Shown: piece by piece, positions 22,984-28,799 of the stretch | How positions within the stretch are numbered: position 1 is the first letter of the stretch | Layout: every line of letters begins with the position of its first letter | Source of the DNA: Guillardia theta CCMP2712 | Taxonomy: Eukaryota; Protista; Cryptophyta | Assembly (NCBI RefSeq): GCF_000315625.1 | Contig: NW_005434557.1 | Coordinates: 134,386-198,385, forward strand | Reading direction: 5' to 3' | DNA: 64,000 nucleotides | Position numbers and translations under genes: made by a program | The notes under the pieces: model-generated | What the model was told of the DNA's origin: nothing | Databases searched by the model: none | What the model saw: only the letters and a program-made list of their open reading frames with translations

Positions 22984-25559
22984 ATGCGACCTTCCTCGCC
23001 CCCTCGCTCCTTGCTGCACTTTGTGCTCGGGGTTGCGGTGGTGGCTGCGGCGGCGGAGAGGATACCATGCAGGGAGGAGCCGCTTCCTCCCCTCGTCGCT
23101 TGCCCTCAAGGCCAATCATGTCCCTTCGAACAAGTGCATATCTCCATAGGGCGATGGCAGGCGGGCGCGGGCTGGGAGATGACGGTGACATGGACGTCTC
23201 AGGTGGCGACAAGACCAGAGCGGAGAGCCACTGAGTGACTGATGCCTCTGACTCGCGTCTGCAGGCGCTTGCGGCCGGTCAAGTACCGTCTGTGAGAGTG
23301 TCGGAGCGCAAGGAAACTCTCACCGGTGAACCTCCTCCTTCTCCTCCTCCTCCTCCTCCTCCTCTTCCTCGTAGCTTCTCCTTGCTACTCCTAGTTACTC
23401 ATCTTCTTGCCTCCTCCTCGTTGCTCCTCCTCATAGCACCGCAGCGCCATCGGGATGCGTCGCTGATTTTGTGGGGGAGACGACCAATTACACATACACT
23501 TCATCGGGAGGTGAGGAGACTCGTCAGCCTGCTCTGCATCTCATGCCCCACTCAGGCCCATTCTACTCTCCTTCCACCAAGTTCTACGTCTCTCCCTCCA
23601 TCCATCATGTCGTCATAGGAAAGCTCCGCCCCTCCAAGTTCTACCACTATCAGGTTGAGCCCCATCTTCGTTCCTGTCTGCCTCAGCTCCTCCTCACGTG
23701 CCGTCGGTCAGGTTGGCGTCAAGCAGCGCAAGGCCATTGCAGCAGGTCGCGCGCCCTCACTCCTGGCGTGACTGGGCTGAACTCATGGCAGGGAACGACC
23801 AATATAGAGACACGGTCTTTCGTTTCAGGACTCCTCCTGCTCCAGGACAAGCCCCCAGGTTTGTCATCCTTGCTTCCGTTGCTCCTCTTGCTTCCTTTTC
23901 TTCTGCTCCCGTGGCGTGTTGTGCATGCCGCTGATGGAAGATGCCAGCGCTCAGCTTACTGGATCCGAGGTAATGAAGATAGTCGTCATCGGCGACCTCG
24001 GGCAGACCATTCACAGCCAGGTGAAGACGAGCAGGAGAGGGAGGGAGGGAGGGAGGGAGGGAGAGGAGAAGCGAGGGAGAGGAGAAGCGAGGGAAGGGAG
24101 AGGGAGGGATCGGAAGCTGAGGAGGAGGAAAAGGAGAGAGGAAACAGGGAGGGAAGGAGGGAGGGAGGGAAGAGAGAAGGAGGGAGAGGGAGGGAGGGAG
24201 GAGCTCCTGACTCGCTGGGTATTGCAGCATACCATGGAGAAGGTGGAAAGCAGCTTGAGAGCATCTGAGAATTCCTACGCCATGAGCTGGATCATCGGAG
24301 ACCTTCCTTATGCTGACGGCGACGGGCACAGATGGGACCCGTGGGGGAGGATGATGGAGCCAGCGTCCGCAAGGTCGATCCGCCTCCTCCTTTCGCGTTC
24401 TTCCTCTCCCTGACTTGCTGCTAGTCTGCCACTCATGGTCCTTCCGGGCAATCACGAGATCGAGCTCGACGCGCAGACGGCAGAGGTGAGGAAGAGGAAG
24501 AGGAGGAGGAGGAGGAGGAGGAGAGAGGGGAGGGGGTTGAGGAGGAGGAGGTTGTTTTCTGCGCCTGAAGCCTCTGCAGACCTTCACAGCGTATCGTCAC
24601 AGATTCAGAATGCCCAGCCAGCTGCCGGAGAGGACGGGGCCAGCACGGGGCAACGACATCCTGTACGAGGGAGGAGCAAGCTTTTACAGCTTTGAGCTGG
24701 GCCTCGTCCACTTTGTCTGCTTGAACACCTACAACACTCGGGGAGCGATGCATGACGTCTCCTCGGATGTGCAGCGGAAGTGGCTGGAGGAGGATCTCAA
24801 GGCGGTTGACAGGAGGAAGACGCCGTTCGTGGTTGTCGGGATGCACGCGCCCTTCTACAACAGCAACAGGAACCACCAAGGGGAAGCTGAGACCGAGCTG
24901 ATGAAGAGCTGGGCAGAGCAGATCCTGAACCGCTACTCGGTGGATGTTGTGTTCGCCGGGCATGTGCACTCGTACGAGCGGAACTGGGGGGTGGCGACGG
25001 GAGGGAAACTTTCGTCCTCAGCTCCCTCCTACATCAACGTGGGAGACGGAGGGAACCACGAGGGCCTCTACGACGATTGGCTGCCGCAGCCTCCATACTC
25101 GGCCTACCGCAACGGCAAGTTCTTCGGGCACGGCGAGCTGTCTGTCTTCAATGCCTCGCACATGCGGTGGACTTGGATCCCCAACCCGAAGCAGGGAGAG
25201 CAGGAGGAGGACAGCGTGTGGATCGTCCGACCCGTCAGCAGCGGGAGCAAGCAGCAGCAGCAGCAGGATACCATCCTGACCAGCGGAGAGGAGGGAAGAA
25301 ACCCGCCTAGCCCCATGTCAGCCGCTCTCCCCCTCACCCTCCTTGGATTCGTCCTCGGTGCTTTCGCGTACGTCATCAGCAAGAGGGTGACGAGGGAGGA
25401 AAGGGGAGGAGGGTCTTCCTATGAAGTGTCAAGCGCCCCGCTGCTCAAGCAGGTACCTTCATATCCCTTCCCTCCTTTCTTAACCCCCCTTTACCCTTCC
25501 CCTCACCCACCCCCTTTGCCTCCTAGGGGTCCCTGAGATCTTTCGCAGTCTCCAGCTGA
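22984..25559 (+). CDS. Purple acid phosphatase with signal peptide and C-terminal TM helix
   Basis: EQVHISI, metal-ligand motifs GDLG, GDLPYADG, GNHE, VGMHAPFY and GHVHSYER. Hydrophobic LPLTLLGFVLGAFAYVI near the C-terminus. Confidence 0.93.
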
Positions 25560-25821
25560 TATCGAGGTGAAGGCAGAGAGCTCAAGCACTCGTCTCATGC
25601 ACGATCACACCTACGTGAGTCGAACTTTCCTGACCCCCCCCCACCCTCCCCACTCTCATCCAGCTCCTCCTCTCCTCCCCTGCCTCACTCCTGCGGTGCT
25701 GCAGGCATGAGCGTGTTGTAGCTGGCGGGACTTCAAGAAGAGACTCTCACGCTTCACTTCACTGCAACTTCTCCGTTTCTCTCCCCACGTCCACAGGCCT
25801 CCGGGCAACGGGCCAACCCCT

Positions 25822-25884
25822 AGAGGGTCTCGGGCGACAGCCAGTCCAAGGACTTTTGCGCTTGTCGCCGTCATGGCCTCCCGC
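25822..25884 (-). promoter_or_regulatory. Eukaryotic type II SECIS element in 3' UTR of the DsbA/FrnE gene
   Basis: Minus strand reads AUGA-C-GGCGACAAGCGC-AAAA-GUCC-UU-GGAC-UG-GCUGUCGCC-C-GA-G: AUGA/GA core, GGCGAC/GUCGCC stem, unpaired AAAA and apical ministem. Confidence 0.88.
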
Positions 25885-25944
25885 AGCCATCGCGCCATTT
25901 AGACAAGGGGGAGGAGGAGGAGGAGGAGGAGGAGGAGGAGGAAA

Positions 25945-27430
25945 CTAGTCTAGAACCTCGCGGAACACCTGCTCGAAGACCTCCGGAGGCTGGGCGCCTG
26001 AGAGTCCCTCCTGCATGTCTGTAAGGAGGAGGAGAGGGTTGAGCTCGTTCGCACCTCTCCATTGATGATGAAGAAGGGAACACCAGAGACGCTGCGGCCG
26101 AACTTCTTCTTCTCGGCCTCAACCTGATCACTGTGAGAATAAGAGCAGAAGAGGGGGAGGGAGAGAGGGGAGGGGGAGAGGGAAGTAGCGACAGGAGTCG
26201 TGTTGGAGGAAATCACAGTGAAGAGATTGAGGCATCAGCAGCACCTCCTTGGCGAAGGCCTGCGGGTTGGAGATAACGCCCGCTGCCTCCTGGTGCTCCT
26301 GTTAGCCCCGCTGTCCTTCCCTCTTCCTCTCCGTCCCCTAAGTTTCCTCCTCTACCTGTCGATCGAGACCGACTTTCTCCGCCGCCTGCCACAGCTTGTC
26401 ACATGCTGAGGAAAAGGGTGGGGAGGGAAGGAAGGAAGGACCTGCTCCAGGACCTGAGGGTCTCCAATGTACTTCTCCTGCGAGAAGTAGTTCCTAACGC
26501 TTCATGTCAGCTCCTCCCCAGTCACCTCCCTCCACCCACATGAAGAGCTCTTCCATCAGCTCGTCCTGCTTCCCCTTGGTCCCCGCCCAATAGATCAGCC
26601 GGTGAGCTAAGAGAAGCGCGTCAGCTCGCCCCCCCCCCTCCCCTGCCTCCCTCCTCCTCTTCTCACAGTCGAAGGTGTTTCCCGTCATCCCACCCATGCT
26701 GAACTTCACGCCGACGCTGCATCGCAACCCGTGAGGTCACAGGACGAGGGCGGACAAGGTTGGCTCACTTGTCGAAAGCCTGGGTGAGCCGGGGCATCTG
26801 CCATCCGGTCAGTCTCCTCCTCGTCAAGTCGCACGAGTGACCATCATGCGAACTCTGTCGGCCCCGAACTTCTCGTGGTACATCTCAAGCTTGTTCCGAC
26901 CCTCCTTTGGAGCCTCAGGTTGAAGCTGGAAGGGTCTGGTGGCGAACAGGTCAGGGAGGGACAGGGAAGCATTGAGCTGCTCACCGCCAGTTCACTTCGA
27001 ACTGAACTTGTGGGAATTTCTTCATCGCCTGCTCCAGGTGACGCTTTCCCACGAAACACCTGGAGGGGGGGGTAAGGGGCGACGAGGCTAGACGGGCCTC
27101 ACCATGGTCAAATGGTGTCAGACACGATGTCAACAACAATGCGCTTGGCGGCAGACATGTCAGCAGCTCCTCCGCCTGGCAAGTCGATCCATGAACACAA
27201 ACACATCAGTGATCAGACATGTACTCACGTAGGTGCAACGCAGAAACAGTGGTGGGGCAATGTCGCTGAGGGGAAGCAACTAGTGCTGAAAGGCGCTTCG
27301 CATGCATGAGACAAGAGAGTCGGCGCGATTGCAAGGAAGGCGCAAAGGAGGATGATACTGCATGAGCACTGGTGATCAAAGCAAACAATCCAACACTGGG
27401 GAGGAGGCGCTTGCTGTGGAGCCGGAACAT
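25945..27430 (-). CDS. DsbA/FrnE-family thiol-disulfide oxidoreductase; selenoprotein (UPWC) with bipartite targeting presequence
   Basis: Spliced IVVDIVSDTI-[TGA 27108-27110]-PW|CFVGKRHLEQA...NWRPFQLQP...GNTFDSHRLIYWA...VSGVPFFIING...SGAQPPEVF. SECIS downstream. Exon 1 (27229-27430) encodes signal plus SSSFAP transit peptide. Confidence 0.92.
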
Positions 27431-28555
27431 GCTCAAGATGCCTCCGGTGACTGACAAGCTTGACAAGAGGAGAACTTCTGATGAAAAAGCGAACATCACA
27501 AGCATTTCAAGATCAGAGCGGGGTAACGGAATCATGAAGCATGTGAGAGTGGTTTGTAAAGCAGCATATTATGAGACCAGCAGATGAGAAGTGCATACAA
27601 AAGTTCACCCTTGAGTACCTCCCACTTCCTCCTCTGGTAATCGAACTGTGCGCCATATCCCTTGACCCTACTTCCTCCTTAGTCTCAACCCATTACTCTG
27701 TACGTCTTCTACTCACAACTGCTTTTGTCCTTCGCCTGGAGCATCATTCTCTCCTATGTTGTTCTTGTCAACCCTTCTCCCAGAACTCTCACGTCCATCA
27801 GTCTCTAGGAACCCATCACTTCTTTTCATATCATGGCATTCAGCTGTTTTCTTTGAATTTCTTGTTGAATACTATTCCACAACTTCCCTACGATCCACTT
27901 CTTCGACACTTCCTCATACCTGATTCTGCGCCCATTACACCTCATCCCAACCCTTGCCTTGGTGCCTTTGTCTTTCTACCTGCCTTCCTGCTTGTCTTCC
28001 TACCTGACGTCCTCCCTCCCTCCCTCCCTCCCTCCCTCCCTTCCTCCCTCCCTCCCTCCCTCCCTCCCTCACTCCCTCTCTCAGTCTTGGCACAAGATCA
28101 TGGGACAGTATGCACCACCCCACCCCTGCAATTTAATACCCCCTCTACCCTACCCAATACGCTCAATGCCCCTATCCCCTTGAAATTCAGTTGTAAGGGG
28201 GGGTGATGAAACTAAAAGATAGGATGAGGAGGGTGGGGGTACGTCTGTCATTCGTGAAAGGGAGTGGGGTGAAAGAGGCAAAGTTCGAAAAGGGGTGGTG
28301 GGGGTGAAAAGGTACCCCTTCATTACTCTGATAAATACCTGGTTTTATAGGGGTACTTCCATGTTTTTGCTATCTGGGGGTGGGTGGGTCCGCGGTTCAT
28401 CAATTGATGCGGGGAGGTGCATCGATTGAAGCGGATCTGAAAGGAGGGGTCATTATGACCTCAAAAAGAGGGGTAGGGGTGAAAATCTCCAGTCACAGAC
28501 TCTCTTGATGGCGATGGTGATAGCGATGGCTGCGCAGGAATAGTATCAGGAAATA

Positions 28556-28787
28556 GAGAGTCAAGGAGATGATAGTAGAGTCAAGGAGATGATAGTAGAG
28601 TCAAGGAGATGATAGTAGAGTCAAGGAGATGATAGTAGAGTCAAGGAGAGGATAGTAGAGTCAAGGAGATGATAGTAGAGTACACAAGGAGATGATAGTA
28701 GAGTCAAGGAGATGATAGTAGAGTCAAGGAGATGATAGTAGAGGCAAGGATATGATAGTAGAGTCAAGGAGATGATAGTAGAGTCAA
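28556..28787. repeat. 20-bp minisatellite GATAGTAGAGTCAAGGAGAT, about 11-12 copies
   Basis: Tandem units with few variants and no spacers. Confidence 0.95.
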
Positions 28788-28799
28788 CGAGTATCCTTG

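Follow-up and report, generated by a model that had tools for sequence, protein, structure and literature searches.

An expressed multi-intron nuclear gene of Guillardia theta that very probably encodes a DsbA/FrnE-type selenoprotein with a U-P-W-C active site

Introduction

The locus described here raises the question of whether a TGA codon that interrupts an otherwise open, intron-containing frame on the minus strand of a Guillardia theta CCMP2712 contig (NW_005434557.1) is a stop codon or is read as selenocysteine (Sec). An earlier note, made from the sequence alone, had proposed the latter and described the gene as a hidden selenoprotein of the DsbA/FrnE type, with the TGA at positions 27108-27110 encoding the first residue of a UPWC active site. 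Positions are those of the window, i.e., the whole stretch of 64,000 nt that was analysed.

DsbA selenoproteins have been described before. A published survey ranks DsbA among the most widespread Sec-containing proteins of algae and counts 14 selenoproteins, belonging to 12 families, in G. theta (PMC7539508). DsbA selenoproteins with a UxxC site (DsbA 1/2) were found in the GOS marine metagenome data (PMC2398784), and others are known from Micromonas, Ciona and Branchiostoma, in which the TGA-bearing first exon was misannotated as UTR (PMC2874816). Here, we combined gene modelling, transcript contigs, homology, SECIS searches and a genome-wide search for the Sec machinery, and we conclude that the locus is very probably an expressed, multi-intron nuclear gene of G. 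theta for a DsbA/FrnE-type selenoprotein with the active site U-P-W-C.

Materials and Methods

Genome searches covered the 87.1-Mb, 669-contig assembly, in which DSBA paralogues were located by a PF01323 search. Homologues were collected with an intron-less paralogue on contig C67 as bait, and bacterial genes annotated as "DsbA family oxidoreductase" were fetched from plasmid and chromid records, giving a comparison set of five proteins (from Ralstonia, Stenotrophomonas, Sinorhizobium, Pseudoalteromonas and Microvirga). The assignment of the window protein to PF01323 goes through these bacterial homologues, which were themselves matched to Pfam. Transcript contigs from four runs, each from a different study, were compared with positions 25400-27500; the comparison was made at the contig level, at which rare variants could stay hidden.

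SECIS elements were searched for with the Rfam model SECIS_1. A genome scan at the gathering threshold found no SECIS that reached the Rfam cut-off of 35 bits; therefore, the E-value mode was used, with the SECIS of two thioredoxin reductase (TXNRD) genes as controls. In addition, we used our own descriptor, consisting of ATGA-N, at least nine pairs (one mismatch and one bulge allowed), AA at 10-14 nt and N-GA. A MAFFT alignment of the two TXNRD SECIS was structurally not sensible, and no covariance model was built.

Results and Discussion

Gene architecture

When the minus strand was read from 27600 to 25800, the stretch quoted in the earlier note (ATG 27158, the TGA, CCA TG and the intron) was found exactly as claimed. 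The ATG at 27158-27156 opens a frame of 16 sense codons, followed by the TGA (27110-27108) and CCA TG, and past the intron (27102-27060) the frame resumes as G TGT TTC GTG GGA AAG CGT, which reads PWCFVGKR. The assembled model consists of 11 coding exons and 10 GT..AG introns of 43-121 nt (Table 1). Together, the exons form a 633-nt frame, in which the TGA is the sole internal stop and which ends with a TAG at 25947-25945. The product from ATG 27158 is 210 aa long with the TGA as residue 17; the spliced precursor from ATG 27430 is 283 aa long, with the putative Sec as residue 90. Further upstream, 1.1 kb from the gene, a unit of about 20 nt (CTCTACTATCATCTCCTTGA and variants) occurs in approximately 11 tandem copies at 28560-28790 on the minus strand.

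Table 1. Features of the selenoprotein locus, in window coordinates
Feature	Position	Strand	Basis
5' coding exon, spliced major form	27229..27430	-	Open frame from ATG 27430 to ATG 27158 across 27228-27176
5' intron, 53 nt, GT..AG	27176..27228	-	Spliced in 3 of 4 runs; transcript joint 27174/27228 (cut +1)
Exon with ATG 27158 and putative Sec codon: beta-1 strand IVVDIVSDTI, then U-P-W (partial)	27103..27175	-	Transcripts and alignment
In-frame TGA, very probably read as Sec	27108..27110	-	Aligned to first Cys of CPWC/CPFC in five bacterial homologues
Core coding intron 1, 43 nt, GTGAGG..CTCCAG, splitting the Trp codon of UPWC	27060..27102	-	Joint in 4 of 4 runs
Coding exons 2-4	27059-26985, 26935-26842, 26797-26769	-	Model and transcript joints
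Coding exons 5-7	26716-26667, 26606-26540, 26493-26442	-	Model and transcript joints
Coding exons 8-11	26385-26356, 26289-26245, 26123-26055, 26010-25945	-	Model and transcript joints
Ten exons after intron 1: remainder of the DSBA-like thioredoxin fold with its GVPFF cis-Pro loop	25945..27059	-	Alignment reaching the ends of the bacterial proteins
Type II SECIS-like element	25823..25884	-	Rfam SECIS_1 (22.9 bits) and own descriptor

The TGA in the mature transcript

Sixteen runs contained 18%-46% of the sampled words from a 1.7-kb stretch of the locus, which is approximately the value for an intron-free copy. In the contigs of the four runs compared in full, nine of the ten coding joints were present at the modelled positions in every run and the remaining one (26797/26842) in three; the joint adjoining the TGA (27059/27103) was among those present in all four. 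Neither mismatches nor indels were reported in the contigs over 25400-27500, and the segment 27100-27174 was a perfect match. Because the contigs are identical to the genome across the TGA, this codon is part of the mRNA and is neither a sequencing or assembly error nor spliced out. Both objections foreseen in the earlier note, i.e., a TGC or TGT in the reads and removal of the TGA by splicing, were thus answered by the contigs of four runs from four studies: the mature mRNA carries TGA, and splicing at the single joint 27059/27103 leaves it in place. An origin of the TGA in an assembly or sequencing error, or its removal by an alternative splice, is set against letter-identical contigs in four runs and a single joint, and its probability is close to nil.

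The contigs of the coding gene and those of a convergent gene both break at a (CCT)n repeat (25900-25950), so that no single contig joins the coding region to the SECIS-like element described below. At the other end, the contigs of three runs end at 27479. There, the contigs of two runs from different studies carry the same 12 extra letters; in one of these runs, the contig then continues with the reverse complement of its own start. These letters are not encoded anywhere in the genome, and an upstream exon at this point was therefore rejected; they probably represent a 5'-end cDNA hairpin or an assembly artefact.

Homology on both sides of the TGA

In local BLASTP comparisons, the window protein was 33%-37% identical to the five bacterial proteins over residues 5-208 (121-128 bits), and in all five the residue encoded by the TGA aligned with the first Cys of a C-P-W/F-C motif. 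The strand before the TGA is conserved (IVVDIVSDTI in the window protein vs. xIDIVSDVx in the bacterial proteins, giving the pattern (I/V)x(I/V)D(I/F)VSD), as are the downstream GK..L..A motif and the distal GVPFF cis-Pro loop (GVP in the homologues). Chance can be excluded as the source of this arrangement, because full-length homology flanks the TGA on both sides and the TGA falls exactly on the first Cys of CPWC. The Microvirga homologue matched PF01323 (DSBA) end to end (130.7 bits), and it also matched the solved structures of Deinococcus FrnE (5CNW; E = 2.9e-30) and SCO1869 (3GL5; E = 4.7e-33). Since its bacterial homologues match PF01323, 5CNW and 3GL5, the window protein is, as judged from sequence, a predicted DsbA_FrnE-type oxidoreductase with the active site U-P-W-C.

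The window protein and the FrnE-type bacterial proteins have in common the signature D-x-x-S-D-x-x-[C/U]-P-W-C and a V-P cis-Pro loop. They differ in two respects. Firstly, the cytoplasmic FrnE of D. radiodurans (5CNW) and Streptomyces SCO1869 (3GL5) have Cys where the window protein would have Sec. Secondly, the alignment with the five bacterial proteins revealed no C-terminal Cys in the window protein, which ends with ...FREVLD directly after the fold, whereas the Stenotrophomonas and Ralstonia homologues have a Cys-containing C-terminal tail. Such a tail is also present in D. radiodurans FrnE.

The same codon in paralogues and in a marine relative

The PF01323 search located two further genes in which this codon is likewise an in-frame TGA. 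The paralogue on contig C67 (L010:1408-2356; G000:C67:301695-302643) is intron-less and reads ...ELVSDTM-TGA-PNGYIGKRHL..., i.e., U-P-N-G if the TGA is decoded as Sec; a SECIS_1 match of 19.0 bits lies at L010 2290-2356, approximately 15 nt past its stop. Its N-terminus is basic and mitochondrial-looking. The paralogue on contig C30 (L011:1178-2231) has at least one intron and reads ...TCTQ-TGA-PHGYIGKKH... (U-P-H-G). Here, the descriptor identified an ATGAC...AAA...TGA SECIS-like element at L011 2179-2231, and Rfam SECIS_1 did not report this element.

Both paralogues resemble the window gene in the position of the TGA, in its context (SD-x-x-U-P and GK(R/K)H) and in the presence of a 3' SECIS-like element. 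However, their identity to the window protein is only about 31%, the latter being closer to bacterial FrnE-like proteins, and they have Gly in place of the resolving Cys, whereas the window protein retains the Cys of UPWC. The absence of introns from the C67 paralogue likewise contrasts with the ten coding introns of the window gene. A fourth PF01323 gene (L009; G000:C43:344876-345211) reads DVVSPYS, with Ser at the active-site position, as in kappa-class GST and HCCA-isomerase-like proteins.

The database entry of the C67 paralogue (UniRef/MMETSP, P0001, 233 aa) starts at the Met after the TGA, and all 120 of the C67-type relatives among the matches listed likewise begin with the Met that follows the Sec position. 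On these grounds, the whole C67-type subfamily appears to be truncated in databases. The claim in the earlier note about truncation by annotation is thus shown only for the C67 paralogue. In JGI metagenome contigs (L023:1100-1200 and L025, encoding P0008), which contain a 59%-identical orthologue of the C67-type paralogue, the sequence in frame upstream of the called start is ...VELVSDTM-TGA-PNGYIGKRHLENAM, with identical flanks. Therefore, the Sec codon is conserved in another marine eukaryote. These sequences show that selection maintains the TGA as a sense codon across the wider family and that gene callers systematically cut such genes short.

These observations bear on the reading of the TGA as a true stop. 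In that case, the gene would yield a short N-terminal peptide or, upon restart at the next Met (MKKFPQ...), a DSBA domain without an active site. Gene callers treat the relatives in just this way, as the 120 listed homologues illustrate. However, the conserved beta-1 strand is encoded by the 16 codons ahead of the TGA, and the TGA itself stands in place of the catalytic Cys; translation from the later Met would give a product devoid of both. In addition, a SECIS-like element is in place, and the same TGA position and flanks recur in two paralogues and in another organism. Termination at the TGA is thus very unlikely, and decoding as Sec is the reading that we follow below.

A SECIS-like element downstream of the coding region

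In the Rfam scan of 24000-27600, SECIS_1 matched once, on the minus strand at 25884-25823 (22.9 bits, full model covered). In E-value mode over the whole window, it was the only SECIS_1 match in 128 kb (both strands), with E = 6.6 over 4227 families and approximately 0.0016 for SECIS_1 alone. The element lies on the coding strand, beginning 61 nt past the stop codon, and in the mRNA its AUGA core would follow the UGA at a distance of approximately 655 nt. Its layout comprises AUGA-C, a nine-pair helix (seven contiguous pairs, a bulge and two more), an unpaired AAAA, a GUC/GAC mini-stem and a 3' C-GA. RNAfold recovered helix II and the mini-stem. The fold of the region was no more stable than those of shuffled sequences (RNAfold, z = -0.36), which is to be expected because the SECIS motif is defined by non-Watson-Crick pairs.

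The score of 22.9 bits is below the gathering cut-off of 35 bits. The best two SECIS_1 matches of the whole genome, with 27.2 and 24.4 bits, are directly downstream of two TXNRD genes, the SECIS of which have the same architecture as the element at 25884-25823. Thus, with Rfam SECIS_1, the elements past clear selenoprotein genes of G. theta reach no more than 19-27 bits, and scans at the gathering threshold therefore miss them. Our descriptor gave five matches in the 128-kb search space of the window, one of which was the element at 25884-25823, and exactly one match, at the expected place, in each of the two TXNRD and the two DSBA paralogue loci.

The SECIS region is also antisense to the 3' UTR of a convergent purple acid phosphatase gene (24610-25899, plus strand), and no contig assigns the element to the mRNA of the coding gene rather than to this antisense UTR alone. 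This neighbour encodes Metallophos and Metallophos_C domains and a C-terminal membrane anchor; its stop is at 25708, and it has two short 3' introns, with exons at 25545-25614 and at 25705-25899 or beyond.

The position of the element also bears on the possibility that the gene is a recent pseudogene, in which a nonsense mutation changed the TGC or TGT of the active-site Cys to TGA. One transition or transversion in the third position of the codon is all that this change would require. Nevertheless, transcripts of the gene are present in four independent studies, its ten introns are correctly spliced and its 633-nt frame is otherwise intact. A pseudogene would leave the downstream SECIS-like element as an unexplained coincidence, given the approximately 0.0016 matches expected in the whole window, and two paralogues bear the same "mutation". 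We consider this origin highly improbable and retain the interpretation of the TGA as a Sec codon.

Sec machinery and other candidate Sec genes of G. theta

The objection that the genome might lack tRNA-Sec, also raised in the earlier note, fails: a tRNA-Sec gene was found with 72.9 bits (over the cut-off), and ARAGORN likewise called it tRNA-SeC(TCA). This gene (L001:1500-1664, contig C65) has a tRNA-Ala(AGC) gene as its neighbour on the same strand, at a distance of 5 nt; owing to this arrangement, both may be transcribed together as a tandem unit. SepSecS (423 bits) and SelD (290 bits) were also present. With the models used, a bacterial selB model for eEFSec and a KTI12 model for PSTK, these two factors were not separable from their paralogues in the genome, nor was SBP2 specifically identified.

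Among other Sec genes, the two TXNRD genes end with GC-TGA-G-stop (GCUG), the classical Sec motif (SECIS at L006:1501-1563, minus strand, and L007:1501-1557, plus strand). A GPX gene (L018, contig C23) and an Rdx-family gene (L020, contig C53) have one in-frame TGA each. Neither locus had a SECIS_1 or descriptor match within 3.3 kb, so these genes could not be used as additional positives; their SECIS may be atypical or located at a greater distance.

Taken with the transcripts, the homology and the position of the SECIS-like element, the presence of tRNA-Sec, SepSecS and SelD supports with high confidence the central claim of the earlier note that the TGA at 27108-27110 encodes selenocysteine. 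We infer that recoding of the UGA (27110-27108) would follow the standard eukaryotic pathway, with Sec in place of the nucleophilic first Cys. The putative type II SECIS in the 3' UTR (25884-25823) would recruit the Sec-specific factors, and Sec-tRNA(Sec) would insert Sec where translation would otherwise terminate. The resulting enzyme might cycle between a selenolate/thiol state and a selenenylsulfide formed with the Cys three residues further on.

Presequence and the two 5' forms

Removal of the 5' intron (27228-27176), seen in three of the four runs, lengthens the open frame as far as ATG 27430, which is the first AUG past 27479, and adds 73 aa. This presequence has a basic start and a hydrophobic core (residues 9-20), followed by AHAVSSS|FAPS. 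With the cleavage site placed according to our own reading, the 45 aa after the Phe include eight Ser and Thr, six Arg and Lys, and one Asp or Glu. In cryptophytes and diatoms, a bipartite signal with an ASAFAP-type motif marks plastid proteins (PMC4329603), and the 73 residues are similar to such a signal. The 73-aa extension, with its signal-peptide-like part and its Phe-initiated, transit-like part, suggests that the protein may be directed to the ER and onward to the complex plastid.

The same intron was retained in one contig of the fourth run. The unspliced reading of 27176-27228 contains stops, and the upstream frame is thereby closed; retention would thus make ATG 27158 the start and yield the 210-aa form without a presequence.

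Relation to known selenoproteins

The description of the gene as "hidden" overstated its novelty. DsbA has already been published as a family of algal selenoproteins, and the algal survey includes the selenoproteome of G. theta (PMC7539508). The window gene is one more member of this known family, in a surveyed species. It shares with the algal and marine DsbA selenoproteins the DSBA-like thioredoxin domain, a very probable Sec as the first residue of CxxC and a putative type II SECIS in the 3' UTR. It also resembles them in having its TGA near the 5' end, which is why annotation tends to lose the first exon of DsbA selenoproteins. In contrast to the known set, it comes from a cryptophyte, has ten very short coding introns and bears a putative bipartite, plastid-type presequence.

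The Sec genes found here, three DSBA and two TXNRD genes, amount to five genes in two families. A list of 14 genes that contained all five would thus span at most 11 families, not the 12 given in the survey (PMC7539508). At least one of the five may therefore be missing from the published G. theta catalogue, or the survey may have classified them differently. A broader proposal would combine import of the Sec-FrnE into the plastid (stroma or periplastidial space), a switch to the cytosol by intron retention and at least one uncatalogued Sec gene; in this combined form it is tentative, and we regard it as rather unlikely.

Conclusions

The gene reading presented here replaces a truncated or split model by a precursor of 283 aa, in which residue 90 is Sec, very probably decoded from the TGA. 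It leaves the knowledge of how Sec decoding works unchanged, but with it the DsbA family of selenoproteins gains a well-supported member from a cryptophyte. Should the putative plastid presequence be functional, G. theta would have a selenoenzyme inside its complex plastid, which would bear on redox maintenance there.
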